Assembly: GCF_000143415.4 (NCBI RefSeq)
Contig: NW_003314330.1
Coordinates: 62,001-126,000, forward strand
Source of the DNA: Selaginella moellendorffii
Taxonomy: Eukaryota; Plantae; Lycopodiophyta
Length of the DNA stretch: 64,000 nucleotides
Reading direction: 5' to 3'
Position 1 is the stretch's first letter; every line of letters starts with the position of its first letter. The position numbers were made by a program, and so were the translations under genes. Below, one piece after another: positions 19,408 to 60,506 of the stretch. Below the pieces are notes generated by a model, which ran no database searches, was not told the origin of the DNA, and worked only from the letters and a program-made list of their open reading frames with translations.

Positions 19408-20031
19408 ATGTCGATGGCTAGTTTGCAAGTGATCTTCTTCTTCTTGTTAGCTCTTGTTGCGGTGGGAGTGTTTGCCTCCGATCCGGAGCTTGTCTCGGAT
19501 TTCGCTGCTAATCCCGCCGCCATCAACGCGAGCTTCTTCACTTTCACTGGCTTTCGCAGCGATGTCACGGCTCCAGCAGGAACTTTCCTGGTGAAGAAGG
19601 CATCGCTCGCGGAATTCCCTGGTCTGAATGGCCTCGGCGTCTCCATGGCCAAGCTCTCCTACCAGCCAGGCACGACCAATCCCCCGCACATCCATCCCCG
19701 GGGCGCGGAGCTCCTCTTCGTGTTACAGGGCTCGCTCAGCGTCGGCCTGTTGGACACCACCAACAAGCTCTTCGTCCAGAAGCTCGAGATGGGCGATATG
19801 TTCGTGTTTCCAAAGGGTCTCGTCCACTTCCAATTCAACGATGGACAGCACGAGGCCAAGGCCATCTCGGCCTTCGGGAGCTCCAATGCCGGCACCGTTT
19901 CCCTCCCTGTCACCCTCTTTGGGTCTGGAATTGACGATCAAATCCTCAGCAAGGCTTTCAAGGTGAGCACGGACACTGTCAAGACTCTCAAAAACGCTCT
20001 CGCAGTGAAGAAAACTGCGAGGAAGCTTTGA
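19408..20031 (+). CDS. Germin-like protein (cupin), intronless, signal peptide
   Basis: Germin boxes NPPHIHPRGAELLFV and GDMFVFPKGLVHFQFN. TATAAAA at about 19326. Confidence 0.95.
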   Translation: MSMASLQVIFFFLLALVAVGVFASDPELVSDFAANPAAINASFFTFTGFRSDVTAPAGTFLVKKASLAEFPGLNGLGVSMAKLSYQPGTTNPPHIHPRGAELLFVLQGSLSVGLLDTTNKLFVQKLEMGDMFVFPKGLVHFQFNDGQHEAKAISAFGSSNAGTVSLPVTLFGSGIDDQILSKAFKVSTDTVKTLKNALAVKKTARKL

Positions 20032-25491: not shown

Positions 25492-26103
25492 TTAGCACTT
25501 CTTCACTGTGAGGGCATTCTTAAGCATCTTGACTGTGTCCGTGCTCACCTTGAAAGCCTTGCTGAGGATTTGATCGTCAATTCCAGACCCAAAGAGGGTG
25601 ACGGGGAGGGAAACGGTGCCGGCATTGGAGCTCCCGAAGGCCGAGATGGCCTTAGCCTCGTGCTGTCCATCGTTGAATTGGAAGTGGACGAGACCCTTTG
25701 GAAACACGAACATATCTCCCACCTCGAGCTTCTGGACGAAGAGCTTGTTGGTGGTGTCCACCAGGCCGACGCTGAGCGAGCCCTGTAAGACGAAGAGGAG
25801 CTCCGCGCCCCGGGGATGGATGTGTGGGGGATTGGTCGTGCCTGGCTGGTAGGAGAGCTTGGCCATGGAGACGCCGAGGCCATTCAGACTAGGGAATTCC
25901 GCGAGCGATGCCTTCTTCACCAGGAAAGTTCCTGCTGGAGCCGTGACATCGTCGCGAAAGCCAGTGAAAGTGAAGAAGCTCGCGTTGGTGGCGGCGGGAT
26001 TAGCAGCGAAATCCGAGACAAGCTCCGGATCTGAGGCAAAGACTGCCACCGCAACAAGAGCTAACAAGAAGAAGAAGATCACTTGCAAACTATTCGTCGA
26101 CAT
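25492..26103 (-). CDS. Germin-like protein, close paralogue of 19408-20031
   Basis: Same germin boxes; only a few substitutions relative to the first copy. Confidence 0.95.
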   Translation of the reverse strand: MSTNSLQVIFFFLLALVAVAVFASDPELVSDFAANPAATNASFFTFTGFRDDVTAPAGTFLVKKASLAEFPSLNGLGVSMAKLSYQPGTTNPPHIHPRGAELLFVLQGSLSVGLVDTTNKLFVQKLEVGDMFVFPKGLVHFQFNDGQHEAKAISAFGSSNAGTVSLPVTLFGSGIDDQILSKAFKVSTDTVKMLKNALTVKKC

Positions 26104-35124: not shown

Positions 35125-38100
35125 TGTGAGTGCTCAAACGGATGGGAAATTGCAATTGACTCTAACCGTCCTTCCGCAGCACAAAGAGGAGTATTACAAG
35201 CTTGGCACCAAACACAACTACACATATACCGGATAACATCACGTCGCATCTTTGGCTAATACAAAGACTTGCACAACTTATCGGTCATACGACAATATCC
35301 CATATACCCACCTAGAACAAGAGAATCATGGTAAGCATGGAGAAACTATGGAATAAAGATAGAAGGCACCACCAATCATAAATGATCATTAGGATCCGTC
35401 CCCACAAAATAAAGAAAGCCATATTCAAGGCGATATTGAGAATGTAAATGCCGGAAAGGCAAGTTATCAGCAAGTGATGCAGGATCCTCAAACGCATCTC
35501 GAAACCTTCGAATCCATGGCTCAATCTTTTGAGCCTTGCGAACCTTATCAAGAGAAGGTAGATCTTGCTCTGCGCTTTGTGGACATTGAACATCAAGTAT
35601 AGCAACCGCCGATGGCACAGAATCCTCGTCTAGAAAATCCACAGATGCTGGAATAATAGGCTCATCAGAAACATGAGAAGAAAGTGGAGAAGGAAGAGGA
35701 GCTCGAGAAAGGGCATCAGCATCAGCCATAGAACTCCCTGGGCGATGAACAACATCAAAATCATATATCTGAAGCTTTAAAGCCCACCGAGCAGCACGAT
35801 CAACCAGGTTCTTCCGCTTCAATAATGAAATAACGGCAGCATGGTCACCTTCAAATAACGTCCGAGAACCATGTAGATATGCATGAAGTTTCTTGAAACC
35901 CCAAACTACCACTAAACACTCTTTCTCCGTCGTGGAGTAGTTCACCTCTGCTGGTTGTAACGTACGGCTTATATATGCAATGGGATGACGCTGACCAGGC
36001 ACACTCGGGCTCTCTTACATTAACACACCTCCAAAACCAATATTATAAGCATCAACGCGCAAAATAAAAGGTCGAGTGTAATTAGGATATGCCAAAACCG
36101 GAGGAGTCGTCAACAGCTTTTTGAGATTCACAAACGCCCACTCACAATCTGAAGACCAGATGAAAGATGATGTTGATAACTTCAGCAAGGCTTGCAACGG
36201 TGCAGTGCAATCAGAAAGATGATCCACAAAACGACCAAGATACTGCACCTTGCCCAGGAAGCGCTGCACATCATTTACACACTTCAGAGTAGGGAACTTT
36301 AGAACGGCTATGAGTTTGTCAGGATCAACTTGCAAACCCTCACGAGAAATATGGTACCCAAGATAAGTTGTGTCCTTGGACCCAAACATGCACTTCGACT
36401 GCTTCAGTTTTAAACCAACATCCCGTAGCCGATCCAACACTTTACACACATCACGAACGTGCTCTGCCCACGTCCCCTCCGAGTGAATTAAGACATCATC
36501 AATGAAGTCAGTAGTCATCTCTAGCATATCACAAAGAACCTCGTCCATCATCTGCTGAAAAGTTGCTGGAGCATTGTTCAAACCAAACGGCATCACCAAG
36601 AACTCATACAAACCAAACGGTGTACGAAAAGCAGTCTTAGGAATATCTTCATTGGCCATCGGTACTTGCCAGTACCCAGAAGCAAGATCTAGCTTGGTGA
36701 ACCAACGACTTTGCCCCAGACGATCCAAGAGATCAGTAGTGTGAGGAAGAGGGTACACATCCGGGATCGTCACTTCATTTAACGGAAAGGACTCCGCGAC
36801 TTCCGAATAACACCTTTCTCCAACATCTCCTTGACGTTTGCACGTAAAATCTTGATCTCTTTGGGTGATTGACGACGAACAGGAACCTTGATTGGACGAG
36901 CATCCCCGATTGGAATGGGATCACGTGTGGCAATCTTGGCCCCTGACGATAGGTCAAATTCAAAGAGATTAGAATACTCCTTCATGAGCTGGTCAACAGC
37001 TGCAACACAAAGATCATCGGAGGGATCGGAAAAGGGAAGAGTAGAATAAGATGGAAACATAAGAGGAAATAGTGGGGGAACAAAAGTAATGGAAGCAGAA
37101 GTAGAAGTAGAGGGATGAAGAGGTACAAAAGTGAGAGGAATGGATGAAACATAAGGAAGTATGAGACAAGGGGGAGAAGCCTCAAAGTCACACTTGGCAT
37201 GATTGCACTGCAACTAATCCATACCAAGAATGAGGTCAAAAACTTGACTCGGCACCACTCGCAACGACTGCAACTCAAGCTCGAGATCACCCACACACAT
37301 AACCAAATCCGCCTCATCTCGTGCACATGCATGTGTACAACCGTTGCCATAAAGAATGAAAACTGGATCCTCCACACAACGCAAGTGTAGATGACAACGT
37401 GTGGCAACATGTCGAGCAATAAAAGATAAACTCGAACCTGTATCAACCAACATGGAGAGAAGAATAGGAGACCTCTTGTTATAAAAACAAGCTTGGAAAG
37501 TAAACACTGGATGAACCGGTGCCAAGTGAACCCCTTGATGATACTCCTGAAAGAAAGATGGAGGGGTCACTAACTTATTCGCAAGGTCCCTCCATTACTC
37601 GTGTGACTCCTCGTTTCCCGGATGCACCACAGTATCCAAACCTTCCACCGTAGCAACACCAACGGAACATTGCTAACGCCAAGGTCTCCACCCGGGAAAT
37701 GGAGGTCGCCAATCCGGAAAGCGCCAACAACGCCGATAAGTATGACCAACTTCATCACACGCCCAGCAACGAACATCACGACCATGACCACGTTCTCGCC
37801 CTTGTCCTTGGACTCGAGTAGCAGCAGCATCAACCTCCATTTGAACAAGACCATCACTCATAGGAAGTGGAGTTGAAGGACGTGTAGCGAGAAGTGGAAG
37901 AGGCGACATCTCATAACGTTGTGCCAAGCGAAGAGCATCGTCAAGGGTGGCAGGAGAGTTCGCAGAAATAATACACCTTACTAAGACGTTTACGGAACGA
38001 GCAGAAATCCCACTGAAAGAAGCTATTAAGGAGCATACTGAATCTTTCCTACTACTCCAAAAATAGATATGAACGGATGAGTCTAATGCACAAGTCCGAC

Positions 38101-39057
38101 AAGATCTTGACGAAGTGTTGGCCACAACATTCCTAGCTTGATCCGCTCCGACATATTTGGCTTCGCACAAAGCAAAAGACTTCAGAAACGAACGCCAAAT
38201 TGCATCACTAACTTAGATGGCCCTTGGCGAAGATGATGCAATTGTTGGAAGGCATCATCACAATCATCGGCATATCTGAAGGCGCGTTTGAAGACGTCCA
38301 GAAGAACACTCCAATCGTCATGAGTGGCTACACTCAATCCATTATACCACTGCAATGCCGTCCCTTGGAGACATGTGGGGAACTCACGCAAACTTCGAGC
38401 ATCATCCCAAGAATGATATGTGGCAATCATCGTGAAGTGATCGAACCAATGGTACACATCATCCCCATGATTCCCATGAAAGAACTCCGGCCGAACGTGA
38501 AGATTGGCACCAAGAGCAGGAGGAGTTGTACCATGTGCCGTGAATGCCGCCATCAACTGAGTTTGGTTGTTCAATTGCAAGCACATAGCATCAAGCAATT
38601 GAACCAACTGCTGCTCTAGAGTCAAAGGAGGAGATTGCGGATTGGCCATGAAGATGAACGCAAAAGAAAGAGCAAAAGAAGAGAAATGAGAAAAAGCTGG
38701 AAAGAAATGGTAGATCTAGACAATGCAAAAAGCTAGATCTAAACCAAAATCATGAAAGGAAATAACAAAAGAAAGGAAATGGAAAAAGCTGGATCTAGAC
38801 AATGCAAAAGCTATATCTAAACCGAAATCCCAAATCCAAGCACTCCCCAGGGACAATCAAAGGTGCCCCTCACTTCCACTAATGTGAGTGCATGGAATAT
38901 AGAAAGGGAATACAGAAATGTGCATATCAATTAGCCCAAAAACCTTAGCTTATATACAGGAGCAAGTGGTCCGGATTGAAACCAATCCGACGACTACCAA
39001 AATCCCACTACGCTAATATTAGTATACGGCATCGTAACCGTACACTTGGTCCTCACA
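35125..39057 (-). mobile_element. Ty3/gypsy LTR retrotransposon copy 1 (3' LTR and integrase core deleted)
   Basis: 5' LTR 38883-39057; gag 38182-38649; CCHC (CWACDEVGHTYRRC); protease LVDTGS; RT (KLDLASGYWQ, FIDD); RNase H (NYSTTEKECL). Only 9 bp (TGTGAGTGC) of the other LTR remain at 35125. Flanks ATAG/ATAT. Confidence 0.93.
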
Positions 39058-39689
39058 ATATGATATATTTATAATAATTAATAAATTTTATTCTTGCATT
39101 TTTATATTATAAATTATATCTATCACCAAATATACCTTTATTATCCACTATGTTATTGAATAAATCTCTATTAAGTTTTATGCTCATTTATTTGGAATTG
39201 TGAGTGCCTGGAATATGGAAAGGGAATACAGAAATATGTATATCAATTAGCCCAAAAACCCTAGCTTATATACAGGAGCGAGTGGTCCGGATTGAAACCA
39301 ATTCGATGGCTACCAAAATCCCACTACGTTAATATTAGTATACGGCATTATAGCCGTACACTTGGCCCTCACATCATCCCTTCTTCTCGGAATAATGGAA
39401 AGCTATCAGGGTTCTTTTGTAGATGGGCCGCAATCTAGAGGAACGTCAGGAGGAGGCATCGGCGGATCTGTAGACAGCATTAACTGCTCCTGATCCCTTT
39501 GTATGAAGTGTTTCAACCGCTACACATGCACAATCTCCAGAGGATCGGCTTGCTGGATGTCATGCCGAACCTCATAAACTTGCAGTCCAACTTGCCACAA
39601 CACCCGATATGGTCCTTTCCACTGTGCAAGGAGCCCCTTAGATAAACCACGTACCGTAAGATGAGGAAAACGCACTAACACCAAATCAT

Positions 39690-40799
39690 TGTAAGGAACC
39701 AACTCTCCAAGATGTCGTAGGCTAAAGGATCCCCAAAAGCATGACCAAAATGACAAAGAGTTCATCAGATGGGACCGAGTCGAAGATCGAATCCAAGACT
39801 GACTCTGAGACCGAGTTCGAGATAGAGTCCGGGATCGAGCCCAAGGCCGAATCGGAGACCGAGTTCGAGACAGAGTCCGAGATCCAAATCGGGTCCGAGA
39901 CCGAGTCTGAGGTTGGGTCCGAAGTCGAGTCCGAGATCGGGTCCGAAGTCGAGTCCGAGACCGAGTCCGAGGTCGGGTCTGAGATCGAGTCCAAGATCGA
40001 GTTTGAGACCGAATCCGAGTACTAATATAGGTCAAGGGGTGAAAGCCCAAAGCGTGCGTCTCCCAGAGGGGGGGGGTTGCAGGGGGTTCCAAAAGTATAA
40101 TAGGGATAGTGAGGTCCAGGAAGCAGTCTTGAAGGAACTCTCCAGTGGTGCTTCCAAATTGACTTGAGGTTGAGACTGGGCCGAGGGGCCTTGGGTGGGA
40201 GTGAGCAGGGACTTGGGTGGTGCCGAAGGGGCCACCCCAGGAAGTGCTCAAGAGCAGCTCCCACTCCCGAAAGGGAAACCGACTGCGGTGCTCTTGGCTC
40301 ATGTGGAGTGGTGCCCTACTTGAATACCATGCAACTCATTGGTCCTTGCCCTTCCTAGGGGCTTGGGCCTTCCTTCGGGATGGAAGTGGGGGGGTAGAGG
40401 TACCCATACCGGGCCGTTAGGCCATGGTGTTTCGCCCCGGCGTCCCGATGTAAGTGTTGCACCCAAGACTTGGGATTTAGAGGGTCCCATGATCAAGTCT
40501 TGTGGTACCAAGGGGTGTTAGGAACCTAGAGGCTTGGTGTGTTTGGCTGCTTGTGCCTGTGGGGAGTGTAGCCGAACCTTAAATCCAGTTTAACCCGGGG
40601 AGGGGGATTGGGAGAGATTTGGGAATCCGTGGATGGATGGCTAACGCTTTGTTGCTCATGCAGTGAGTAGCTGAAACGAAGTAGGAACTGGTACCATAGG
40701 AGGGAACCTTGGCAAGGGAACTTAGCAAAAGCCAAGGCAGTGTTGGATGAATAAACGAAGTAAACTGGCAAATTGGAAAAGAAAAATTTGTGGCTTATA
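39690..40799. mobile_element. Solo LTR of another family nested in the gypsy integrase
   Basis: Ends TGTAAG...CTTATA; 5-bp TSD ATCAT (39685-39689 and 40800-40804); splits integrase EYKVD|DLVLVRFPH. Confidence 0.85.
39775..40020. repeat. Hexamer-based minisatellite (CCGAGT/CCGAGA/TCGAGT) inside the solo LTR
   Basis: About 40 degenerate 6-bp units. Confidence 0.9.
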
Positions 40800-45408: not shown

Positions 45409-46738
45409 TGTAGCGCATCTTGGAAAAGGGGCAATTGTTTGATGAAAGAGCCCTTAGTGGCTATTTTATCCCCATTTATCTCCTAAGGTTCCAAGGATCC
45501 ACAATGATAGTATATTCAAATCTCATTCCATAATTATATGCGCTACACTCAACCCCCCCCCTTTCAGAGATGTTAATATTCTCATTGATTATTGGGGAAC
45601 TAACACCTTCATTTCCGCACTGAATCTACCACTCATCCCATGATTATATGGGCTACACTCACCCCCCCTTCAGAGATGTCAATATCCTCATTAATTATTG
45701 GGGAATTAACACCTCCATTTCCGCACTGAATCTACCAATCCTTCCATTATGTAGACCAGTTATTCCATGTGAGGCAATTAGTCATCCACCTATACTGTAA
45801 TCCCATGGTGGATACCTTCGTCCGTGGATACTCCACACATTTCCACACTGAATCTACCAATCCTTTCATTATGTAAACCAGTTATTCCATGTGAGGCAAT
45901 TAGTCATCCACCTATACCGTAGTCCCACGGTGGATACCTTCGTCTGTGGATACTCCACACATTTCCACACTGAATCTACCAATCCTTCCATTATGTAGAT
46001 CAGCTATTCTATGTGAGGCAATTAGTCATCCACCCTAAACCGTAGTCCCACGGTGGATACCTTCGTCCGTGGATACTCCACACAAGAGGAAAGACATACA
46101 CATGAATGCCCAATACATACAATTTCAAATTTAGGGATAGGAAAGACGTACACATGAATGCCCAATACGTACAATTTCAAATTTAGGGGTAGGAATATAC
46201 CTTGCTCAATCATGCCCAATACGTACAATTTCAAATTTAGGGGTAGGAAAGACGTACACATGAATGCCCAATACGTACAATTTCAAATTTAGGGGTAGGA
46301 AAGACGTACACATGAATGCCCAATACGTACAATTTCAAATTTAGGGGTAGGAATATACCTTGTTCAATCCTTCCATTGTGTAGACCAACTATTCCATGTA
46401 AAGCAATTAGTCCCACGATGGATACTCCACACAAGAGGAAAGACATACATATGGATGCCCAATACGTACAATTTCAAATTTAGGGGTAGGAATATACCTT
46501 GCTCAAGGGTATATTATATTTTAAGTAGCCACTAATCAATGGGAATCGAACCCGTGCCATTTGCTCTGATACCAACTATAGTGCACCTTATCTCTCTCCC
46601 CTTAAACCAGCTGAAAAAGGGGCAATTGCTTAATGAGAGAGCCCTTAGTGGCTATTTTATCCCCATTTATCTCCTAAACTTCCAAGGATCCACGGTGACA
46701 GTATATCCAAATCTCATCCTATGATCATATGCGTTACA
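45409..46738 (-). mobile_element. Non-autonomous LTR element (TRIM-like)
   Basis: LTRs at 45409-45547 and 46577-46738; exact TSD TCAAT; Met PBS TGGTATCAGAGC (46563-46574); poly-G PPT at about 45548-45561; non-coding interior. Confidence 0.92.
45716..46500. repeat. Internal tandem arrays of the TRIM: 3 x 122 bp, then about 6 x 52 bp
   Basis: ttccRcactgaatctacca recurs every 122 nt; tgcccaatacgtacaatttcaaatttagggg recurs about every 52 nt. Confidence 0.9.
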
Positions 46739-47899
46739 TCAATGATCTACTATACATGAAAATTTTCTAATCATCTACTTGTGCCTTCTCAAAAGCCACT
46801 AACACTTTAGTGGTGAGTTACAACATGAGCTCCTTCTATTCTCCTCTATTCATTGGGTGGATATGAAAAGTTGGGTAACTTTGTGTGGGAGGGAGTTTTA
46901 GTTAACTTGGTAGAGTTATGGTGTGGCTCTATTGACAAAAATAAGAAAGAAATATAGTGACAATTGTAAAATAAAGGTGATTGCTTTGCTTGAGATGATC
47001 TTTTGGGAGATTTGCTGGAGCAATAATGCAGTCAATTTAGATTGTCAATCTTGAAAATGGAACTTCAAAATTATAATAGTATTGGAACCACATACTAGAC
47101 TACTATCATTCTAGAAAATACAAGATTCTACACTTTACTCATAATGAATTAAAATTTCTACAAAAGTAAGACATTATATACATAATAAATCTTATGGCTA
47201 GAACAAGGTATATTACCTATAATCAATACCATTTTTTTTCTTTTTAGAAATGGGTAATATAGTAACATAAAAAAGAAATTATGACTCTCATATTACATTA
47301 TAGAGTAGCCTAAATATCCCATAGCACTTATTGATATAATAGAATATTGTTGAAATTATTATAGTTATATGTCTTTAAATCTTTCTTGATTTTCTTGTAC
47401 ATCCAAGCATGCACACCTTCTAAACCAGCTTTTAAGCATTTAAACACATGTGGGAAAAAAGTGGCATAATAATTTTTATACTCTTTATTTCCAAAAGTTA
47501 AAGATCTTGAACATACATAGATATGGAGATAAATAAATCAAAGTTGCAATCTTAATTTTTCTCTGTTTTGTGTATTTGATAATATTCCAAGCTGAAGAAA
47601 ATGAATATTAAAAGCTTTTCAAAGAGTCTTAAAGGTTTTAAGAACATGGACCATTCATATTGTAAGCTCTAGTAAAATCTTTAGACTTAACAATTTTATA
47701 TCTAGATTTTCAATGTAATTCCTCGACTTTGCTGGGAAGAACTAAGTAGAAGAATAGGAAAGCAAGTGCTATAACTTACAAAAATTCATAATATACACAT
47801 ATACACATTATATATAGATTCTCATCTAAGAAGCATGAGACTCTATTTACATGGGTGTATTGCACTTCCTTGTTAATTCCTTTATTCTTTTTGTTTATG

Positions 47900-49146: not shown

Positions 49147-49498
49147 TGTGGTATTAAAGCAAATGGTAAGGGTTTAATTTTCATTGATTAATGGCTACTT
49201 AAAATATAATATACCCTTAAGTAATATATATTCCTATCCTTATTGCTCCTCCTTGCCATAGACAAAGGAATAATTAATTGCTCACATAGAATAGCTAGTT
49301 TAGTTGTCCTAGTATGCAGCAAGAAGCTTCTATTTTTATAAATTCCAAGGAGCTGGTCAGGACACACAAGCTGGGGACATTTGTACAACTAGACAGGAGT
49401 CTGGTTCTAATTTAATTAAGTGGCTTGTATTGACTTATTGGGCTTGTAAGAGCACGGACTAGCTGTTTTATTTACAACTCTTGAGAAGTAACTCTGCA

Positions 49499-50102
49499 TT
49501 ATCTTCTCTCTAGACAAGGAACTGGATTGGCCAAAGCATTACTGATTGTAACGTCGTTGGCAACCAGATAGTAGTTAAAGCTGGAGGGGCGGCAAGGGTT
49601 GTTCGGATCACCATACACAAACCGGAACCACATCTTTACCACACCATTAGTCTTGGACTCACCAATCGCTCCACATTCTGTGCATAAGCCCCCATGTTGA
49701 AGTTGCCATTCTGTGGGAAAATGTTCCACTTGACAGTTCCCAGTCCTCCCTGGTTCTTGCCGATAATGTGACCAGCTTGATCGCCCTTCTTCCCATTAGC
49801 CGCCTTGATACCAATCTCGGCTACTCAGTCTCGCATTGCTGGATTCGTGTTTGTGCCTCTGCCCAGATCACTCCTGCGAATTTCTGCATAGAGATACTCA
49901 ACAACATCCACATTGGGCTTGCATCGCTTAAAGTTGACCTCCTTGACAGGCTGCGCAACTCCCAGCCTGAATTCATTACCTTGAGGCATGGAATTCAACC
50001 ACTCCCCTCCCATGACTATGTTGGTTGGACGCTGTGTGATAGCCTGGGTTATATGAGGAAGGAGAGTCAATGGTAGCAGGAGAATCTTGCATAAGTGAGC
50101 CT
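49499..50102 (-). pseudogene. Secreted non-specific endonuclease, copy 1 (pseudogene)
   Basis: Colinear with 56016-56612 but ATG changed to AGG, TGG to TGA at 49825, a 7-nt deletion near 49657, and loss of the stop codon. Confidence 0.9.
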
Positions 50103-50828
50103 TTATATCTTGCTCTTGCTCATGCTCTTGGCTGGATATTTATATTGAGAAACCGGGTAAAGATTTTCAACACTCACGGGTTTGAACAACTTTAAGTCTG
50201 AATCAACGGCCACGTTGTGCCACGTTAGAAGCAAACGTTAACAACCCTAAGCCGTCTCTTCTAAAACGCGTTGGTAGGAAAACTTATCTTTTCTGCCTAC
50301 CATGATGCTAACCCATTGATAGAAGGACGGGAATTGCAAAGCTAAATGTTTAAACTGACGTTAATCAGTGAGGATAGATTACGTCCTGGAAACGCAGAAG
50401 AAGGAAAGTACCATGGCGATGGCACTACAAAACGAACTCGTGAGCTCGTACCTCGAGCTTGTCCACGGTTTTCACTTGAGAGTGCCGTGCACAGAAACCA
50501 AGCGTGGCTGCAAGCGCAGCAAAGTTTTTGAAGAATTGGTAGCAGCTAGAGTGCCAGAAGATGTCACCTCTTTGCTAGATCAAGAGGAAGCGGAACTATG
50601 CATGTTCATTGATGAGAACATCCTCTGCACATAATTCTCAAGACTGCAATACTGATTTTCACTCTTAAGGTCTTCCAAATCTGATAACTTGAGTATGTGC
50701 TGAAAGGGAAGCTGCAGAAAGATGGTTAGCCGGTGGCATTTGTATAGCGAGACACGAGTACACGGTTTAAGTACTTTTATTGGGCTAGTTCTTGGAACTA
50801 GCCGTTTCATTTACGGCTCCTCCTAGCT

Positions 50829-51425
50829 TCAAGGAACTGGATTGGCCAAAGCATTACTGATTGTAACGTTGTTGGCAACCAGATAGTACTTAAAGCTGGA
50901 CGGGCGGCAAGTGTTGTTCCGATCACCATACACAAACTGGAACCACATCTTCACCAAACCATTTGTTTTGGTGGCGTCACTCACCAATCGCTCCACACTC
51001 TGTGCATAAGCCCCCATATTGAAGTTGCCATTCTGTGGGAAAATGTTCCACTTCACAGTTCCCAATCCTCCCTGGTTCTTCCCGATAATGTGACCAGCTT
51101 GATCGCCCTTCTTCCCGTTCGCCGCCTTGATACCAATCTGGGCTACCCAGTCTCGCATTGCCGGATTCGTATTTGTACCTCTGCCCAGATCGCTCCTGCG
51201 AATTTCTGCATAGAGATACTCAACAACATCCACGTTCGGCTTGCATTGCTTAAAGTTGACCTCCTTGACGGGCTGCACTACTCCCGGCCTGAATTCATTC
51301 CCTCGCGGCATGGAATTCACCCACTCCCCTCCCATGATTACGCTGGCTGGACGCTGTGTGATGGCCTGGGCGATATGAGGGAAGAGAATCAACGGTAGCA
51401 GAAGAAGCTTGCACAAGTGAGCCAT
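50829..51425 (-). CDS. Secreted DNA/RNA non-specific endonuclease (His-Me finger, Endonuclea_NS_2-like), 198 aa
   Basis: Signal peptide MAHLCKLLLLPLILFPHIAQA; motif GDQAGHIIGKNQGG..NIFPQNGNFNMGAY..VE; intronless. Confidence 0.8.
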   Translation of the reverse strand: MAHLCKLLLLPLILFPHIAQAITQRPASVIMGGEWVNSMPRGNEFRPGVVQPVKEVNFKQCKPNVDVVEYLYAEIRRSDLGRGTNTNPAMRDWVAQIGIKAANGKKGDQAGHIIGKNQGGLGTVKWNIFPQNGNFNMGAYAQSVERLVSDATKTNGLVKMWFQFVYGDRNNTCRPSSFKYYLVANNVTISNALANPVP

Positions 51426-51619
51426 TGCGAAACACCGTTGATGATGGCCTCTTGATATTGGGTGGGTATTTGTATTGAAGATCCGGGTGGAAAATTTCAA
51501 CACTCGTGTCACGACTTCTAAGTCTGAATCAACGGCCAGGATTGTCCCAGGAAGTGAATGGAATTCTACGTGGCAACCCTGTCTCGTCTTTTAACTGACT
51601 ATGGAGATTCTTTTCTTAA

Positions 51620-53620
51620 TCTCTTATTATCATACTACCAGGAGCAACCCAGCAAATCCTAGATGATTCACTCGCACCTTCACCACCTTGAAACAAAATG
51701 GAAGAAAGAAAAAAACAAAGGAGATAGAGAGAGAGAAAAGAGAATTCCAAGCTAGAAAGCTGGAACGAATTTCGCCCATATACATTGCCTGTGAGAAGCA
51801 AATCTGTGTGAGTGTGGCATATCCTTTGTACAGAGTTCTCCATCCTTCTCACAAGGCAATAGTGTAAAGAGCATCAAAAGGCCCTTTGTATATGCATTGC
51901 CACAGCCCCTTGAACAAAGAGCACCATTATTCTCCAGAAGAAGAAAAAAACATTGGAAGAACATTCCAAAGATTGAAAAGAAGAATTCAATACAAAATAG
52001 CCTTAAAGCGCAGCTATTAGTCAAGATTTGACAGTGATATGATGCCATCCACTAGCATCCACTAGCGTCCCAGCTTAGAACATCTCAAGCACCCAATTTT
52101 CTAAGAGTTCAAGCCCTTATATTCTAGAATCCACCTTTTAATTCCAACCTTTGGAATAGGAAACTAGATGGAAGAAAGACAAAATTTATCTATCTTACCA
52201 GGATGGGAATAGTTAAGGACAAATCTCATCCAGGTCTCTTCTGCATGAACACACTCATTTTTCCCAGCATTTGTACACACTTTGGAGTTGCTATGGCTTC
52301 TGCAAATAAAAACCTCCAGCTCAGGCTGAGGATTTTGCAAAAAAGAGTACAATAATCATTTAAGAATTCCTCTTTAAAATTAAATAACTTATGGAGCATT
52401 TTGATTTTAATATTGTTAATCCCTTCATATCATAAAATAAATGTATTACTATTACAAATTCATCACCAGTCATTGGCAATTGTAAATGAAAGTTTAGTGG
52501 GTGTGTCTTAAGTTTTTGGGGCCACTCCCTACAGTATTTTAAAAGGATCTATATGCGCTAGTATACACAGTAAACTTCTATTTTCTGAAGCATTGGTATG
52601 AGATCGCTTGTGCAAATTTCTGCATAGAGATACTCAGCAACATCCACGTTGGGCTTGCATCACTTAAAGTTGACCTCCTTAACAGGCTGTGCTACGGCTT
52701 GAATTCATTCCCTCGTGGCATGGAACTCAAGTCTCCCATGACTATGTTGGCTGCACTGGCTTGGGCGATATGAGGGAGGAGAATCAACGTAGCAGGAGAA
52801 GCTTGCAAAAGTGACCCATTGCGAAACACCGTTGATGATGGATATGGGAATTCCACGTGGCATGCATGAATATTCTTTCCTTAGGATTATCATACCACCC
52901 AGAAAATCCTCGACGTGATTCCACTCGCAAAACCTCCCCATCCCTAGTTTCTCTAGATTGCGGTGCAGGCCCAGCGTAAGTCGTACAGCTCGAAACATTG
53001 CTCTTGCCTTGGACTTGGATCCTCGTCTTGATCACGACGCAGATGATGAACTTCTTTGGTGGTAAATAGATTGTATTATATGATACAATAACGCAAACCC
53101 CCGATAAAGGAAGCTCATTCCTTCTTGCCCGGTATCCAAAGATCCCTGTAAGGAATCCAAAAAGTCATCAAATTCCATCTTTTGTTTGTAGAAAAAAGAG
53201 TAACTTGTAGCAGCCTTGAAAGCTTGCACCATTTGTCTCTGCCGTATAAGAGTGGCAGCTAATCCACCTCCAAATTGCACTGCGGAAACGAAATGGAAGA
53301 AAACAAGGAGAGCAAGTGTATCGCGTCGGCCAGAATCGCTAAGCTGTTGGCCATGAATCCTCCAATCACTTCCACCACAAATACAGAGAAAAAGGAGAAA
53401 AATCCAAGCTAGAATTCTGGAACGATTTTCTTGGCGGATTGATAGACGACCATATGTATACATTGCCTGTGAGAAGCAAATCTGTGTGATCGTGGCCTAT
53501 CCTTTGTAGAGAGTTCTCCATCCTGACAATAGTGTAAAGAGCATTGAAAGACGGCACTGCCAGTTCCACCTCGTTGATCCTGGGAAGCAGAAACACACAA
53601 AGATCGCCATTATTCTCCGT
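51620..53620 (-). pseudogene. Mitochondrial carrier family pseudogene fragments (about 51620-51950 and 52860-53620)
   Basis: NALYTI..LYKG, AVQFGGGLAATL, GQEGMSFLYRGF and VIKTRIQVQG; broken frames. Confidence 0.7.
52601..52820 (-). pseudogene. Endonuclease copy 3, 5' fragment
   Basis: MGHFCKLLL..MPRGNEF..VKEVNFK*CKPNVDVAEYLYAEI with frameshifts; truncated. Confidence 0.85.
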
Positions 53621-53799
53621 TTTTTATTTAAAAAGAACGAAATATGCTCGCAGCTATAAGGCATTCGATTCAATCTCTGCTGCAAAGAAACAATAGAGTT
53701 TCCTTGTTTTCCTTCTTGTTCCCAAGCAAAAGAATCTACACACCATCGACCGAGAGCATAGATTCACTAGCCCTAAATATTTTCAAAAAGAAAAGAGAA

Positions 53800-53871
53800 C
53801 GCCGTTGCCGGGGATCGAACCCGGGTCGTCCGCGTGACAGGCGGAAATACTCACCACTATACTACAACGAC
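53800..53871 (-). tRNA. tRNA-Asp(GTC)
   Basis: 72-nt cloverleaf differing by 1 nt from 22566-22637, followed directly by TTCTCTTTTCTTTTT (Pol III terminator). Confidence 0.97.
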
Positions 53872-54184
53872 ATTGACATTTATCAAAGCTGGCTATCTGT
53901 CTTAACAGTCAAAGGTATTAAGCAACCTTATTCCCACTTTTTAACGCTTTACGATTGGGAATAGTGAAAGACAAATTTCATCTAGGTTTTGTGTGCCGAG
54001 TTGCTTCATTCTGCCAAATGAACACGCGCTTTTCGTTAGCATCTGTGTAAACTTTGGAGCTGCTATGGCTTTTGCAAATATAAAAGCCTCCAACTCTGGC
54101 CATGAATTCATCCTCCTCTAGTTGCCTTCCAAATCAATAGATACTTCTAAGCAAAGCTCTTTAGATCACAAAGGTTCAAGAGAT

Positions 54185-54778
54185 ATGTCGATGGCTTACT
54201 TGCTAGTGTGCTCTTTGTTTCTCGCAGTAGGAGTTTATGCCGCAGACCCGGAACTTGTCTCAGATTACGCTGCTGAACCCACCGCCACCAATGCGAGCTT
54301 CTTCACTTTCACTGCCTTTCGCGGCCATGTCAGGGCTGCGCCAGGAGCTTTCATGGTGAGGAAGGCATCGCTTGTGGAATTCCCAGGTCTTGCTGGTCAG
54401 GGCGTCTCCATGGCCCAGCTCTTCTTCCAGCCAAGCTCGGTCAATCCCCCCCACATCCATCCCCGGGCCTCGGAGCTCCTCTACGTTTTAGAGGGCTCCC
54501 TCGCCGTTGGCCTGGTGGACACCACCAACAAGCTATTCGTCCAGAAGCTTGGGACGGGCGATGCGTTCGTGTTTCCGAAGGGTCTCGTCCACTTCCAATT
54601 CAACGAAGGACAGTACGCAGCCAAGGCCATCTCAGCCTTCGGGAGCTCCAATGCCGGCACTGTTTCCATCCCCGCCACCATCTTTGGGTCTGGAATCGAC
54701 GATCAAGTTCTAAGCAAGGCCTTCAAAGTGGGCATAGACACCATCCATACGCTCAAAGCGGCTATCCTGAAATTCTGA
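54185..54778 (+). CDS. Germin-like protein
   Basis: Signal peptide, NPPHIHPRASELLYV and GDAFVFPKGLVHFQFN. TATAAAA at about 54079. Confidence 0.95.
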   Translation: MSMAYLLVCSLFLAVGVYAADPELVSDYAAEPTATNASFFTFTAFRGHVRAAPGAFMVRKASLVEFPGLAGQGVSMAQLFFQPSSVNPPHIHPRASELLYVLEGSLAVGLVDTTNKLFVQKLGTGDAFVFPKGLVHFQFNEGQYAAKAISAFGSSNAGTVSIPATIFGSGIDDQVLSKAFKVGIDTIHTLKAAILKF

Positions 54779-56015
54779 AATTGATATGCCTTAATTGGCA
54801 TCTTTTGTATTTGTGGAGCTTTTGCTTTCCTCCATAAATTAAAAGTGCATCATGGTTCAAGAGAATTTGGAATTTTTGAATTGCAAGAAGTTTGCAAGTT
54901 TGGAAAATATTGAAGAAAATGGGAAGTTGTGTTGGTCATATTAGGTCAAATCCTTACATCAAAGAGATGTGGAGCGTTTGATTGTTCACGGGATTCATTC
55001 TCCGCACCAAACTATTGTTTGAATTTAAAATTCACTGCAACAGTGGTGACCCGGTTCCCGTATAACAAGATCCAAATCTAGGCTTAACCACATTGTCCAA
55101 TTGTACTCTACCATTTGCCTTTTTTCATACATTAGGTTGATGGAATCTCCTATATTAAGCTGCCAATTTGTCTTTGTGTCTTTTGACAAAAAAAAAACTA
55201 TTTATATCCACATAAGGATCTCCATTGGAAGAAGGCCACTTTCCAAGACAAGAATGGACTTTTGTATATGAACAAGTCCTCTAGCATATCCCATATGCAT
55301 TGTGAAAGTTTTGGACCTGTAATTTCATGGCAGTTAGTTTGGAAACTGTAATAAGCAAATTGTGCTACCTTGACACAGTCTTTCACTCCCTCTTTCCATG
55401 TGCATCTTCAATGGAGAGAATAGGCTAGGTACTTGTAAATGTTCATCTCAGCAATTTGTTCTCCATTGTAGCAGCAGATTTTGGAGGTTGGGTTTTTAAA
55501 GATCATTAAAACCATCTCTACTAGATTCCCTTACTCTTTTAATTGAAGAAGTATGATATTTATCATCTTAGCTAATAACCTAATCAAGTTAATAATGTAT
55601 TGCTCTATAAATCATCTATCAGCTTAATAACCCAGGAATAAAAATTACTTTGTAATATTACTGATATTGCTCAACACCTAATCAAGTTATTAATGTATTA
55701 ATAGCCCAACAATTTTACTTATAATGCATTGAAGTGTTGTTTAGTGCAATTTCTGGTGTGACAAGTTATCGGCCAAGTCAAGGCTTGCCATCTAATATCA
55801 AACAGTTGTCCTGTTATGCAGCAATAAGTTTTTATTTTTAAGATTCCAAGGAGCTGGTCAGGACACACAAGCTGGGGGCATTTGTACAACTAGACAGGAG
55901 TCTGGTTCTACTTTAATTAAGTGGCTTGTATTGACTTACTGAGCTAGTTAAGAGCAAGGACTAGCTGTTTTATTTACGACTCTTGAGAAGTAGCTCTGCA
56001 TTATCTTCGCTCTAG

Positions 56016-56612
56016 TCAAGGAACTGGATTGGCCAAAGCGTTATTGATTGTAACGTCGTTGGCAACCAGATAGTACTTAAAGCTGGAGGGGCGGCAAGGG
56101 TTGTTCCGATCACCATACACAAACTGGAACCACATCTTTACCACACCATTAGTCTTGGTGGCATCACTCACCAATCGCTCCACATTCTGTGCATAAGCCC
56201 CCATGTTGAAGTTGCCATTCTGTGGGAAGATGTTCCACTTGACAGTTCCCAGTCCTCCCTGGTTCTTCCCGATAATGTGACCAGCTTGATCGCCCTTCGT
56301 CCCATTGGCCGCCTTGATACCAATTTCGGCTACCCAGTCTCGCATTGCCGGATTCGTGTTTGTGCCTCTGCCCAGATCGCTCCTGCGAATTTCTGCATAG
56401 AGGTACTCAACAACATCCACATTGGGCTTGCATCGCTTAAAGTTGACCTCCTTGACAGGCTGCGACACTCCCGGCCTGAATTCATTACCTTGAGGCATGG
56501 AATTCAACCACTCCCCTCCCATGACTATGTTGGCTGGACGCTGTGTGATGGCCTGGGTTATATGAGGAAGGAGAATCAATGGTAGCAGGAGAAGCTTGCA
56601 AAAGTGAGCCAT
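56016..56612 (-). CDS. Secreted DNA/RNA non-specific endonuclease, copy 4, 198 aa
   Basis: Intact, close paralogue of 50829-51425 with the same catalytic motif. TATAAAT at about 56651-56657. Confidence 0.8.
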   Translation of the reverse strand: MAHFCKLLLLPLILLPHITQAITQRPANIVMGGEWLNSMPQGNEFRPGVSQPVKEVNFKRCKPNVDVVEYLYAEIRRSDLGRGTNTNPAMRDWVAEIGIKAANGTKGDQAGHIIGKNQGGLGTVKWNIFPQNGNFNMGAYAQNVERLVSDATKTNGVVKMWFQFVYGDRNNPCRPSSFKYYLVANDVTINNALANPVP

Positions 56613-57239
56613 TGCGAGACACTATATCTTGCTCTTGCTCTTGGCTGGATATTTATATTGAGAAACCGGGTAAGATTTTCAACACTCACGGGTTTGAACG
56701 ACTTTAAGTCTGAATCAGCCACGTTGTGAATAACAACTCTAAGCCGTCTCTTTTTCTGCCGGTAAATTTATTGCAAATTTAAATGTTTAAACTGACGTTA
56801 ATCAGCTTCTGGAAACAAAGAAGGAAAGTGCCATGGCGATGGCAGCGCTACAAAGCTCGTGAGCTCGTACCTCGAGCTTGTCCACGGTTTTCACTTGAGA
56901 GTGCCTTGCACAGAAGCGTTGTTGCAAGCGCAGCAAAGTTTTTGAAGAATTGGTAGCAGCTAGAGTGCCAGAAGATGTCACCTCTTTGCTAGATCAAGAG
57001 GAAGCGGAATTATGCATGTTCATTGATGAGAACATCCTCTGGCATAATGCTCATACTGATTTTCACTCTTACAGTCTTCTTTGGTACGTGGCAAAATACA
57101 GCTCCGTCCTTGCCTTGGAAAATTTCAGCACTCGTGTCACGACTTTGAAGTCTGAATCAACGGCGAGGATTGTCCCAGGGAGTGAATGGAATTCTTCTTT
57201 TTACTGACGTTAATCCAATTTTTGCTTAATCTCTTATTA

Positions 57240-58810
57240 TCACCAGGAAAATCCTCGATGATTCACTAACCTCTTCGTGGCATCCGCAGGCCCAGCGTAA
57301 GTCGTGCAGCTCGAAATGTTACTGGACTTGGATCCTCGTCCTGATCACGTCCTGGAAACGTAAAAGAAAAGGGACTATAAGAAAACATTGAAAATTACCA
57401 TGGGATTTGTCACGGCAGCAGCGATGGCAGCGCTACAAAACGAGCTCGCCAGCTCGTACCTCACGTCGAGCTTGTCCACAGTTTCCGCTTGCGAGTGCCG
57501 CACACAGAGCTTCTTTGACGCTCCCCACAGTGGTAGATAGATTGCATTAGACGGTCCCCATACAATCTCAAATTCCCTATAAAGGGAGGTGTGCCTGTCC
57601 AAAGTTCTAGCGACATCCAGAGATCCCTGTAAGAAATCAACCTTTGTTCATAAAAAGAGAGAGCGAGTTTTCCTTCATTTACCCCTTTCTTTCTTCAAAG
57701 AATCAAAGAAAAGTTACTCACTATTAGTCAAGAATTGACAGTGATGTGACAATTTTCTAAAAGTTCAAGTCAAATGAAAAGCGTGACAGCACCGGTTCTT
57801 TAAGCATAACGGCATTCTTAACAATGAAATCCCTTATAGCCAGGCACTGTCCACACCTTTTAATTCCAACCTTTGGAATAGGAAAATAGATGGGAATAGT
57901 GAAAGAAAGACAAGATTTATCTATCTTATTATCCAGGATGGGAATAGTCAAAGAGAAATCTCATCGAGCTCTCTTCTGCTGGTATCCTACAGTATTTTAA
58001 AAGCAATTATTTAATCACATGAACATTATCATACCACCGGGAGCACCCCAGAAAATCCTCGACGTGATTCCACTCGCAAAGCCTCCCCATTTCTCGTTTC
58101 TCTGGCATCTGCAGGCCCAGTGTAAGTCGTGCAGCTCGAAATATTGCTCTTGCCTTGGACTTGTATCCTCATCTTGATCACGCCAGAATCCATAAGAAAA
58201 CATTGAAAAGTAGCATGGGATTTGTCACAGTGGCAGCGATGGCAGCGCTACAAAACGAGCTTGCGAGCATCGAGCATCGAGCTTGTCCACGGTTTCCCCG
58301 CGCATAGATCTTCTTTGAACGTCTTTGGTGGTAAATAGATTGCATTATATGGTCCCCATACAATAACGCAAACCCCCGGTAAAGGGAGCTCAGTCCGGCA
58401 TCCAAAGATCCCTGTAATAAATCAGAAAATATCATCAAATTCCATCTTTTGTTCGTAGAAAAACGAGCACCTTGTAGCAGCCTTAAGGTTGCACCATTTG
58501 TCTCTGCCGTATAGCATCCACTCTGCCGTATAAGAGTGGCAGCTAATCCACCTCCAAATTGCACTGCGGGATTATCTTTACGAAATGAGAAAACAAAGGA
58601 AATACAGACGAAAAAGAGAAAAATCCAAGCTAGAATCCTGGAACGATTTTCTTGGTGGATTGATAGACGACCATATGTATACATTGCCTGTGAGAAGCAA
58701 ATCTGTGTGATCGTGGCCTATCCATCCTGGCTATAGTGTAAAGAGCGTTGAAAGACGGCAATTCCAGTTCCAGCTCGTTGAACCTGGAAGAATTAAAAAA
58801 ACAAAGATCG
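57240..58810 (-). pseudogene. Mitochondrial carrier family pseudogene fragments (second cassette copy)
   Basis: YELASSFCSAAIAAAVTNPM, LSSLYRGFALLY and AVQFGGGLAATLIRQ; frameshifted. Confidence 0.7.
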
Positions 58811-59007
58811 GGATTATTCTCCGAAAGAAAAAAGAAATTGAAAGAACATAAAAAAGGACGATTCAATACCAAATAGCCTTGAAGCTTGCGGATGGCATCA
58901 CATACCCGATTGCTGGTGTGTAGATTCTTTGGTCTAGGAACAAGAAGGAAAACAAGGAAACTCTACTGTTTCTTTTCAGCAGAGATCGAATTGTAAGAAA
59001 AAGAGAC

Positions 59008-59078
59008 TGCCGTTGCTGGAATAGAACCCGGGTCGTCTGCGTGGCAGGCAGAAATACTCACCAGTATACTACAATGAC
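59008..59078 (-). pseudogene. tRNA-Asp-derived pseudogene (anticodon now GCC)
   Basis: Colinear with 53800-53871 but with several substitutions, TTCG changed to TTCT in the B box, and a 1-nt deletion. Confidence 0.85.
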
Positions 59079-59475
59079 ATTGACATTTCCAAATTAAAAG
59101 CTACGGTTGTACCTTTACAACGTTATTCCTATAACCATATAGTCCAGAATCCACACCTTTTCATAATTCCCTCAACCCTTTACCATTTGAAAGATTGGGA
59201 ATAGTGAAAGGAAGACAAGATTTGTCTATCGTATCCTGGATGGACAATAGTCAAGGACAAATTTCATCCAGGTCTCGTGTGCTGAGTTGCTTCATTCCGC
59301 CAGACGCACACGCGCATTTCCCAGCATCTGTACGAACTTTGGTGTTGCTATGGCATTTGCAAATATAAAAGCCTCCAGCTCTGCCCATGAATTCATCCTC
59401 CCCTTCAGCTAATTGCCTTCCAAAACAATAGACACTTCTAAGCAAAGCTCTTTAGATCGCAAAGGATCAAGAAAT

Positions 59476-60072
59476 ATGTCGATGGCCTACTTGCTAGTGT
59501 GCTCTTTGTTTCTCGCGGTAGGAGTTTTTGCCGCAGACCCGGAGCTTGTCTCGGATTATGCTGCTGATCCCACCGCCACCAACGCGAGCTTCTTCACTTT
59601 CACTGCCTTTCACGGCGATGTCACAGCTGCACCAGGAACTTTCATGGTGAGGAAGGCATCGCTTGTGGAATTCCCAGGTCTTACTGGTCTGGGCGTCTCC
59701 ATGGCCCAGCTCTTCTTCCAGCCAAGCTCGGTCAATCCCCCACACATCCATCCCCGGGCCTCGGAGCTCCTCTACGTTTTAGAGGGCTCCCTCGCCGTTG
59801 GCCTGGTGGACACCACCAACAAGCTATTCGTCCAGAAGCTTGGGACGGGCGATGCGTTCGTGTTTCCGAAGGGTCTCGTCCACTTCCAATTCAACGAAGG
59901 ACAGTACGCAGCCAAGGCCATCTCAGCCTTCGGGAGCTCCAATGCCGGCACTGTTTCCATCCCCGCCACCATCTTTGGGTCTGGAATCGACGATCAAGTT
60001 CTAAGCAAGGCCTTCAAAGTGGGCATAGACACCATCCAGACGCTCAAAGCGGCTTTTGCAGTGAAATCCTGA
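59476..60072 (+). CDS. Germin-like protein
   Basis: Paralogue of 54185-54778; germin boxes intact. Confidence 0.95.
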   Translation: MSMAYLLVCSLFLAVGVFAADPELVSDYAADPTATNASFFTFTAFHGDVTAAPGTFMVRKASLVEFPGLTGLGVSMAQLFFQPSSVNPPHIHPRASELLYVLEGSLAVGLVDTTNKLFVQKLGTGDAFVFPKGLVHFQFNEGQYAAKAISAFGSSNAGTVSIPATIFGSGIDDQVLSKAFKVGIDTIQTLKAAFAVKS

Positions 60073-60506
60073 AATTGATATGCCTTAATTGGCATCTTTT
60101 TGTGTTTGTGGAGCTTTTGCTTTCCTCCATAAATTAAAACTAAAAGTGCATCATGGTTTAAGAGAATTTGGAAATTTTGAATTGCAAGCTCACCAAGTTT
60201 GGAAAATATTGAAGAAAACAGGAAGGATTTATTGCTTGTGTTGGTCGTATTAGGTCCAATCCTCACATCAAAAGAGATGTGGAGCGTTTGATTGTTCACG
60301 GGATTCATTCTCCTCCGCGCGAAACTATTGTTTGAATTTAAAAATCGCCCCGCGCAAGAGACATTCGTAGAATATTCTTGTATATGCCGTGCTTAACGGA
60401 AATCCTGGCCGGTGCTTTTAACGGACCGACTAGATAGTGCCACGTCACCACCCCAGGAAAGGGTTAAAAAGAAGAGGCCTTTTTGTGTGCCGCGGGCAAG
60501 CCCGTG

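Follow-up and report, generated by a model that had tools for sequence, protein, structure and literature searches.

We found two intact, transcribed genes for a 198-residue nuclease of the mainly bacterial family PF13930 (Endonuclea_NS_2) in a 64-kb stretch of the lycophyte Selaginella moellendorffii (contig NW_003314330.1, positions 62,001 to 126,000; this whole stretch is called the window, and coordinates are counted from its first base). The explanation that we favour overall, with reasonable though far from complete confidence, is that these are domesticated foreign nuclease genes. Both encode a His-Me finger nuclease headed by a predicted signal peptide, and a foreign gene has thus probably been turned into a secreted plant nuclease.

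The four copies announced in an earlier note on this DNA, two intact and two decayed, all lie on the minus strand at the positions given there, with the extent of the shortest now revised. The intact genes are copy D (56016-56612), which corresponds to NCBI LOC112340718, and copy B (50829-51425), which is absent from the annotation that we examined. Each is a single open reading frame (ORF) for 198 amino acids with a PF13930 match; the two share 92.6% of their DNA sequence, with 17 amino-acid differences between their products. The pseudogene, copy A (49499-50102), is the youngest duplicate of copy D, with a synonymous divergence (dS) of 0.08. In a nucleotide alignment of the four copies, its start codon has become AAG, Trp93 has become TGA, 7 bp are deleted and the stop codon has become TGT. 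Copy C (52601-52841), delimited by the same alignment, is a 5' fragment of ~240 bp, in which only the leader and about 60 further codons are left, themselves shortened by in-frame deletions; its identity to copy B is ~83%. Both intact copies contain the motif GDQAGHIIGKNQGGLGTVKWNIFPQNGNFNMGAYAQNVE and two cysteines in the mature part (C61 and C173), as the earlier note had stated. In the family alignment these cysteines are nearly restricted to Selaginella. An exact look-up of the two 198-residue proteins returned no matching gene on record, and the best database match was the NCBI entry 'uncharacterized protein LOC112340718 [Selaginella moellendorffii]'.

The family assignment is firm. PF13930 matched copy D with 32.3 bits and copy B with 33.3 bits (gathering cut-off 27), and PF01223 reached 14 bits, below its cut-off of 23. 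Nothing else in Pfam was matched at E <= 1, including the families of the S1/P1-type and RNase T2 nucleases, which the earlier note had named as the familiar secreted nucleases of plants. PF13930 is placed in group 5 of the His-Me finger nucleases (PMC5714182). An AlphaFold2 model built from a 63-sequence alignment reached a mean predicted local distance difference test score (pLDDT) of 88 and a predicted template modelling score of 0.81, with low confidence at residues 1-20 only. Foldseek returned 55 matches in the PDB at E <= 0.001, the best 50 of which are all His-Me nucleases, in the order EsaD of Staphylococcus aureus, EXOG, EndoG, EndA, Serratia nuclease and NucA. A structure search of the atlas added stand-alone forms and the C-terminal PF13930 toxin domains of Rhs, CdiA-type, LXG/YeeF and extracellular contractile injection system (eCIS) proteins, with TM scores of 0.61-0.66. 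In a search of the PDB sequences with the family profile, EssD was the sole strong match among solved structures (E 8.4e-13); a single-sequence search of the same sequences with the nuclease found no match.

The active site is preserved as well. Six positions, G83, H112, G119, G120, N136 and E145, are invariant throughout the 63-sequence alignment, and all 17 residues at which copies D and B differ lie elsewhere. His112 (codon 56277-56279, minus strand), the predicted general base within the D-Q-A-G-H motif, aligns exactly with the residue mutated in the EsaD H528A crystal entry 8gun, the catalytic His528. The codons from Asn136 to Glu145 (56178-56207, minus strand) include the predicted metal-binding asparagine and the conserved His-Me glutamate; their roles we assume to be those known from Serratia and EndoG-type nucleases. 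The Selaginella proteins thus belong to PF13930, have the His-Me (beta-beta-alpha-metal) fold proposed earlier and carry intact active-site residues, from which we infer that they cut DNA and RNA.

Transcription was examined with raw stranded RNA-seq reads bearing the same species label, placed at 97% likeness, from three raw runs, together with the contigs of run X1. Reads of run X19 span 50949-51545 and 55924-56700 at a depth of ~10-14 (~10-12 for copy B), and no reads fell on the copy C fragment. Every first mate lies on the plus strand, so that in libraries of the usual stranded kind the nuclease RNA derives from the minus strand. The X1 contigs run unbroken from 55829 to 56596 and no splice joint was reported anywhere. 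Since reads and contigs traverse the whole ORF in this way, the genes are intronless, as the earlier note had held, and both intact copies, whose expression that note had made a touchstone of its reading, are transcribed unspliced from the minus strand. The 3' untranslated region (UTR) of copy D covers 55829-56015, with an AATAAA signal at 55831-55836 and an X1 contig reaching 55829. Upstream, a putative TATA-type box, TATAAATA (56650-56657, minus strand), lies 45-38 nt before the ATG of copy D; copy A retains it and copy B has a changed version. The reads also contained second alleles (51237 C>G in 6/10 reads, 56268 C>T in 4/17, 56299 G>T in 3/17), which likely represent the other haplotype of the assembly or an extra near-identical copy.

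These data bear on the public gene model. LOC112340718 is annotated as a 136-residue protein that starts at Met31 and lacks a 96-nt in-frame GT..AG 'intron' (56393-56488, minus strand), whose excision would cost the core sheet 32 residues. The reads and contigs pass through the two proposed splice sites unspliced, and the intron is therefore unsupported. The leader and 32 core residues of the real product are thus probably missing from the public protein.

The leader comprises codons 1-21 of copy D (56550-56612, minus strand) and was recognized from alignments and hydropathy as a predicted signal peptide, MAHFCKLLLLPLILLPHITQA. It has a basic residue (K6), a leucine-rich core at residues 7-15 and small residues at positions -3/-1 (T/A in copy D, A/A in copy B) before I22. 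Hydropathy over nine residues reaches 3.3 at residues 7-15 and stays at or below 1.3 in the mature part; the pLDDT of the leader is 53-56. The leaders of D and B differ by three non-synonymous and four synonymous changes, with a ratio of non-synonymous to synonymous divergence (dN/dS) of 0.21. The leader is absent from all relatives recovered, bacterial or eukaryote-like, and these begin with M-x-N-R-P opposite I22-T-Q-R-P of the plant protein, which makes the leader an addition placed exactly before the ancestral start. Of the signal peptide claimed in the earlier note, the hydrophobic N-terminal leader is thus evident; export itself is a prediction, if one well founded on such features.

The genes sit in plant DNA. 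Over the 17,985 bases compared, the window agrees at every position (100%) with S. moellendorffii scaffold GL377634.1, which is 1.03 Mb long and on which coordinates are those of the window plus 62,000, and the nuclease genes have as neighbours genes for pentatricopeptide repeat (PPR) and PPR-DYW proteins, a cytochrome P450, an NPH3 protein, germin-like proteins and retroelements, besides an ORF with a DnaJ domain. Elsewhere, too, the window looks like any nuclear DNA of a plant. Integration into the host chromosome is evident from the scaffold length, from these neighbours and from the plant genes that were duplicated along with the nucleases. The GC content at third codon positions (GC3) of the nuclease genes, 0.58-0.60, lies close to the 0.61-0.72 of neighbouring genes.

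Self-comparison of the window revealed a segmental duplication at 49302-60343, in which 49302-55030 corresponds to 55804-60343 and the unit consists of one nuclease and one germin-like gene; its germin-like part, 53960-55030, matches 59246-60343 at 91.5%. Copies B and C are confined to the first duplicated unit. Copies A and D form a young pair (93% identity, dS 0.08), and copy B is older, with a dS of 0.23 to both. The dN/dS ratio is 0.175 between D and B and 0.34 between D and the pseudogene A. The low ratio between D and B shows purifying selection on the working copies; with copies A and C decayed, this is birth and death on a small scale, the mode of evolution proposed in the earlier note. 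After tandem duplication together with neighbouring germin-like genes, two genes still work, one is a pseudogene and one a fragment. The 'expanded family' of the earlier note is duplicated indeed, yet the term is overstated, since only two genes work at this locus.

Relatives were sought by a word-indexed search of 5.8 billion proteins (16 matches) and an exhaustive HMMER search of 1.84 billion representatives (239 matches at E <= 0.001). The Selaginella gene was the only named plant protein among the matches of both. The nearest relatives are stand-alone proteins of ~170 residues and 41-56% identity, encoded on bacterial (some cyanobacterial) or eukaryote-like contigs. The bacterial ones include P0011, whose 122-kb contig also encodes transposases, a resolvase and a TacA/GNAT pair; P0020, which adjoins HipA and a PatG-type cyanobactin protease; P0025, from a contig of 481 kb; and P0200. 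No conserved partner or immunity-type gene was found beside the bacterial stand-alone relatives, and the 132-residue ORFs upstream of P0020 and P0025 are dissimilar. Wider bacterial relatives are stand-alone proteins or C-terminal domains of 350-1220-residue proteins, in keeping with the mainly bacterial distribution claimed earlier. Long proteins with a C-terminal nuclease domain comprise ORFs of 618 and 726 residues in Fischerella and Nostoc, a 700-residue protein on a 5.4-Mb contig, the LysM-GH18-nuclease protein P0023, and the chitinase/chitin-binding-nuclease fusions P0191 and P0192, which NCBI records assign to the springtail Folsomia candida and which may represent another eukaryotic capture of the domain.

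The closest relatives of all (47-56% identity) stem from single-ORF contigs of ~1-1.5 kb out of many sequencing runs and Joint Genome Institute (JGI) samples. A scan of JGI metagenomes yielded two more ~1-kb contigs of the eukaryote-like kind and nothing else. In the leaderless eukaryote-like relatives (L006-L025, L026, L027, L030, L031, L035-L040), the coding sequence has a GC content of 0.53-0.61 between long, AT-rich non-coding flanks of 0.36-0.44, a contrast that bacterial contigs do not show, and the contigs carry TATA-like boxes. A fragment downstream of the gene in L006 matched only plant leucine-rich repeat (LRR) receptor kinases in the PDB (BRI1, E 0.006); two short flank pieces of the same contig had no Pfam match, and one flank piece had no meaningful PDB match. 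That these relatives would amount to cytosolic non-specific nucleases with no visible inhibitor is puzzling.

In a maximum-likelihood tree, the Selaginella pair falls inside a clade of stand-alone proteins (support 99/94) that also contains the bacterial-contig proteins and both eukaryote-like groups, and the long cyanobacterial proteins form the adjoining clade. Branching inside the stand-alone clade is poorly supported apart from one eukaryote-like group, which is sister to the bacterial P0011 (92/87). A foreign, ultimately bacterial origin is likely, given that the gene is patchily distributed, has no introns and is nested among bacterial sequences; the host-like GC3 together with the dS of 0.23 between paralogues speaks against a very recent arrival. 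We therefore hold a foreign rather than vertical origin of these genes to be a good deal more probable than its opposite. The horizontal acquisition suggested in the earlier note gains from the nesting in a clade with bacterial members and from the lack of any other named plant proteome; it loses by the relatives of 52-56% identity on eukaryote-like contigs, and one transfer is not separated from several.

We propose that a stand-alone His-Me nuclease of ultimately bacterial source would have been transferred horizontally into the Selaginella lineage, and that it would have belonged to the EssD/YeeF branch of PF13930, a domain that bacteria use at the C-terminus of polymorphic toxins. After the transfer the gene would have remained without introns, its base composition would have come to resemble that of the host, and it would have acquired a poly(A) signal, a TATA-type promoter and 21 more N-terminal codons, which would provide a signal peptide. 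This leader would direct the nascent nuclease into the endoplasmic reticulum (ER) co-translationally and so keep it apart from the plant's own DNA and RNA. Its cleavage between Ala21 and Ile22 would yield an enzyme of 177 residues, which would be set free into the apoplast or possibly the vacuole. There His112 would act as the general base that activates water, Mg2+ on Asn136 would stabilize the leaving group, and DNA and RNA would be cut with no sequence preference. Compartmentation would thereby replace the immunity proteins that the toxin-type bacterial relatives need. The most likely use of such an enzyme would be the destruction of extracellular microbial nucleic acids, in defence or against biofilms, with nucleotide or phosphate salvage as an alternative. 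Germin-like proteins are typical secreted stress proteins; by analogy, a defence use of the Selaginella nuclease may be suggested, if tentatively. The broadest version of this proposal, in which a lycophyte turned a nuclease of interbacterial warfare into a secreted immune weapon, amplified it with germin-like defence genes and so gained a third, His-Me class of secreted plant nucleases acting on apoplastic microbial DNA and RNA or on biofilms, is speculative, and we put it forward as one possibility among several.

Several of our findings weigh against this proposal. The sole link of the nuclease to defence is its neighbourhood with germin-like genes. Expression is modest, and two of the three RNA runs gave values ~6-10x lower than the other, which suggests that expression depends on condition or tissue. 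Since the transcript contig ends 14 nt short of the first ATG of copy D, use of this ATG is deduced from where the TATA box lies and from the conservation of the leader, which is of the coding type; with a start at Met31, the nuclease would be left in the cytosol. Leaderless relatives occur on other eukaryote-like transcripts. Approximately unbiased (AU) tests, finally, do not reject trees in which Selaginella and either or both eukaryote-like groups form one clade (p-AU 0.27-0.34), and an older acquisition followed by vertical descent, or a transfer between eukaryotes, is therefore possible.

The last point leads to the rival accounts of origin. The gene might be an old plant gene, present in an early land-plant or streptophyte ancestor and lost from most lineages, with Selaginella as a survivor and not a separate recipient. 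Such a history would suit the 52-56% identical relatives with their GC contrast, TATA-like boxes and long non-coding flanks, the contig that bears a fragment resembling a plant LRR receptor kinase, and the single clade that the AU test retains; yet neither protein search recovered an annotated plant proteome besides that of S. moellendorffii, and the best tree interleaves bacterial-contig proteins with the eukaryote-like groups, P0011 being sister to one of them. We consider this history unlikely. A giant virus (Nucleocytoviricota) or other eukaryotic vector, in place of direct delivery by a bacterium, is suggested by feature and shape searches of the ESM Atlas, in which stand-alone PF13930 clusters, mostly labelled Nucleocytoviricota, rank among the nearest, and by a report that S. 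moellendorffii holds some giant-virus-derived genes (PMC4083422). The Atlas rows, however, are not alignments and take their taxon labels from few members. Viral structure matches in BFVD reach at most 22% identity, family-specific motifs matched no relative in IMG/VR, the 64-kb window contains no viral gene, and the nuclease is not listed in that report, which saw no additional viral genes near its Selaginella cases. This route accordingly appears quite improbable to us. An intronless, bacterial-looking and poorly annotated gene could also raise the suspicion of bacterial contamination, an assembly artefact or dead ORFs. Contamination is excluded by the 1.03-Mb scaffold with plant genes on both sides of the nuclease copies, to which come four diverged copies co-duplicated with germin-like genes; strand-specific RNA reads and the dN/dS of 0.18 speak against dead ORFs. 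We thus regard this reading, contamination and dead enzyme alike, as refuted and give it practically no credence.

The other rival concerns location. An active nuclease might not be exported at all: the leader could keep it inside the ER or the vacuole, with a role in programmed cell death or the turnover of nucleic acids, or a start at Met31 could place it in the cytosol. The NCBI model does begin at Met31, the transcript evidence stops before the first ATG as described, and the TATA box implies a 5' UTR of ~15 nt, which favours leaky scanning. Against this, both intact copies show coding-type conservation of the leader (dN/dS 0.21), the C-terminus, ANPVP, carries no ER-retention motif, and the intron of the NCBI model is contradicted by unspliced reads and contigs. 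A free non-specific nuclease should moreover harm the cytosol, and no inhibitor gene is evident. Retention inside the cell seems to us a minority prospect, and we retain the domesticated, secreted nuclease as the favoured explanation.

We found no published report of this gene in the literature on horizontal transfer and endonucleases in Selaginella, on horizontal transfer of PF13930 or on polymorphic toxins in Selaginella. If the proposal holds, the locus would clearly illustrate, in a vascular plant that diverged early, how a bacterial toxin domain can be captured; it would extend the secreted plant enzymes by a nuclease type so far unknown among them, and would offer a simple system for understanding how a dangerous enzyme becomes safe in a new host. 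The steps of domestication would then be legible in the sequence: a signal peptide joined where translation formerly started, a eukaryotic promoter with a poly(A) signal, a host-like composition, and tandem birth and death of copies. In addition, the locus as read here corrects the public 136-residue model of LOC112340718, from which the leader and 32 core residues are probably missing.

Four germin-like (cupin) genes lie in the window. That at 54122-54778 (plus strand; Pfam Cupin_1, 8.6e-36) was co-duplicated with the nuclease unit, that at 59413-60072 (plus strand) is its counterpart in the duplicated unit, and two more are found at 19381-20031 and 25492-26103. The copy at 54122 had zero reads in the three raw RNA runs, yet it is covered by X1 contigs. 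In run X19, depth is zero over most of the spacer and the germin-like gene, with islands at 53138-53535 and 53735-53933 as exceptions. Shorter RNA islands of ~72 nt, at 53307-53378 and 53800-53872, contain reads that run on into unrelated sequence on both sides, with loose ends that agree in four runs; they look like exon-sized pieces common to a spliced transcript or repeat encoded elsewhere. The duplicated spacer also holds minus-strand ORFs at 53032-53463 (143 residues) and 58178-58684 (168 residues, with no Pfam match), possibly chance ORFs or remnants of some gene. Directly upstream of the nuclease and germin array, 45421-46742 consists of short tandem and nested direct repeats, with self-match offsets of ~52, 122 and 158 bp at 90-97% identity. 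Ordinary retroelements are represented on the minus strand by a copia-type reverse-transcriptase ORF (RVT_2) at 2232-4310 and by gypsy-type reverse-transcriptase, RNase H and integrase ORFs at 35376-40302.

Comparison with known systems sets the Selaginella nuclease apart from the familiar secreted plant nucleases. S1/P1-type enzymes (BFN1/ENDO) use a three-zinc site and RNase T2 enzymes (S-like RNases) a two-histidine transferase mechanism; in fold and chemistry both are unrelated to the His-Me protein. They act in the apoplast or vacuole in defence, senescence and phosphate salvage, the very location and uses proposed here. Closer in fold are Serratia nuclease, EndA, NucA and the streptodornases (Foldseek E 4e-5 to 4e-4), which are secreted, sugar-non-specific His-Me nucleases with a DRGH-type histidine and an asparagine-bound Mg2+, secretion of the plant protein being predicted. 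Unlike it, most of them score better to PF01223, and they are larger (~220-250 residues) and serve virulence or DNA uptake.

The best structural match is EssD/EsaD, a toxin of the type VII secretion system (T7SS) of S. aureus (PDB 8gun, 8guo), which shares PF13930 with the plant protein, as does the LXG toxin YeeF of Bacillus; the position of the catalytic histidine, the core and an RP motif near the C-terminus are all alike in EssD/EsaD and the plant protein. EssD and YeeF, however, are C-terminal domains of large toxins that are exported by the T7SS and paired with immunity proteins, whereas the plant protein, ~16% identical to them, stands alone with a predicted eukaryotic signal peptide and no immunity gene nearby. 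The layout of polymorphic toxins, an N-terminal trafficking or repeat region followed by a C-terminal toxin, is seen only in more distant relatives, the plant protein being a stand-alone domain of 198 residues. No adjacent immunity gene was found in the window, where the nuclease genes adjoin germin-like genes and non-coding spacer. With neither a trafficking region nor an immunity gene, the Selaginella nuclease is not a polymorphic toxin system.

Among sequences with a known kind of host, the closest (40-50% identity) are the bacterial stand-alone proteins of ~170 residues (P0011, P0020, P0025, P0200), which align with the mature plant protein over its full length, from I22 onward, and the domains of the 618-726-residue Fischerella and Nostoc proteins, which align with plant residues ~68-196. 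Both kinds lack a signal peptide and occur in contexts rich in mobile elements or toxin-antitoxin genes. The Folsomia candida fusions of PF13930 with chitinase or chitin-binding domains contain the same domain as the plant protein in a different host and architecture. A similar pattern, the capture of an antagonism domain into a secretory context, is known from the 'dae' amidases of ticks, domesticated interbacterial toxin genes that encode an amidase and not a nuclease. Capture of a bacterial antagonism domain by a eukaryote, with a secretory context, is thus already known in other lineages, and the Selaginella genes would be a further instance.

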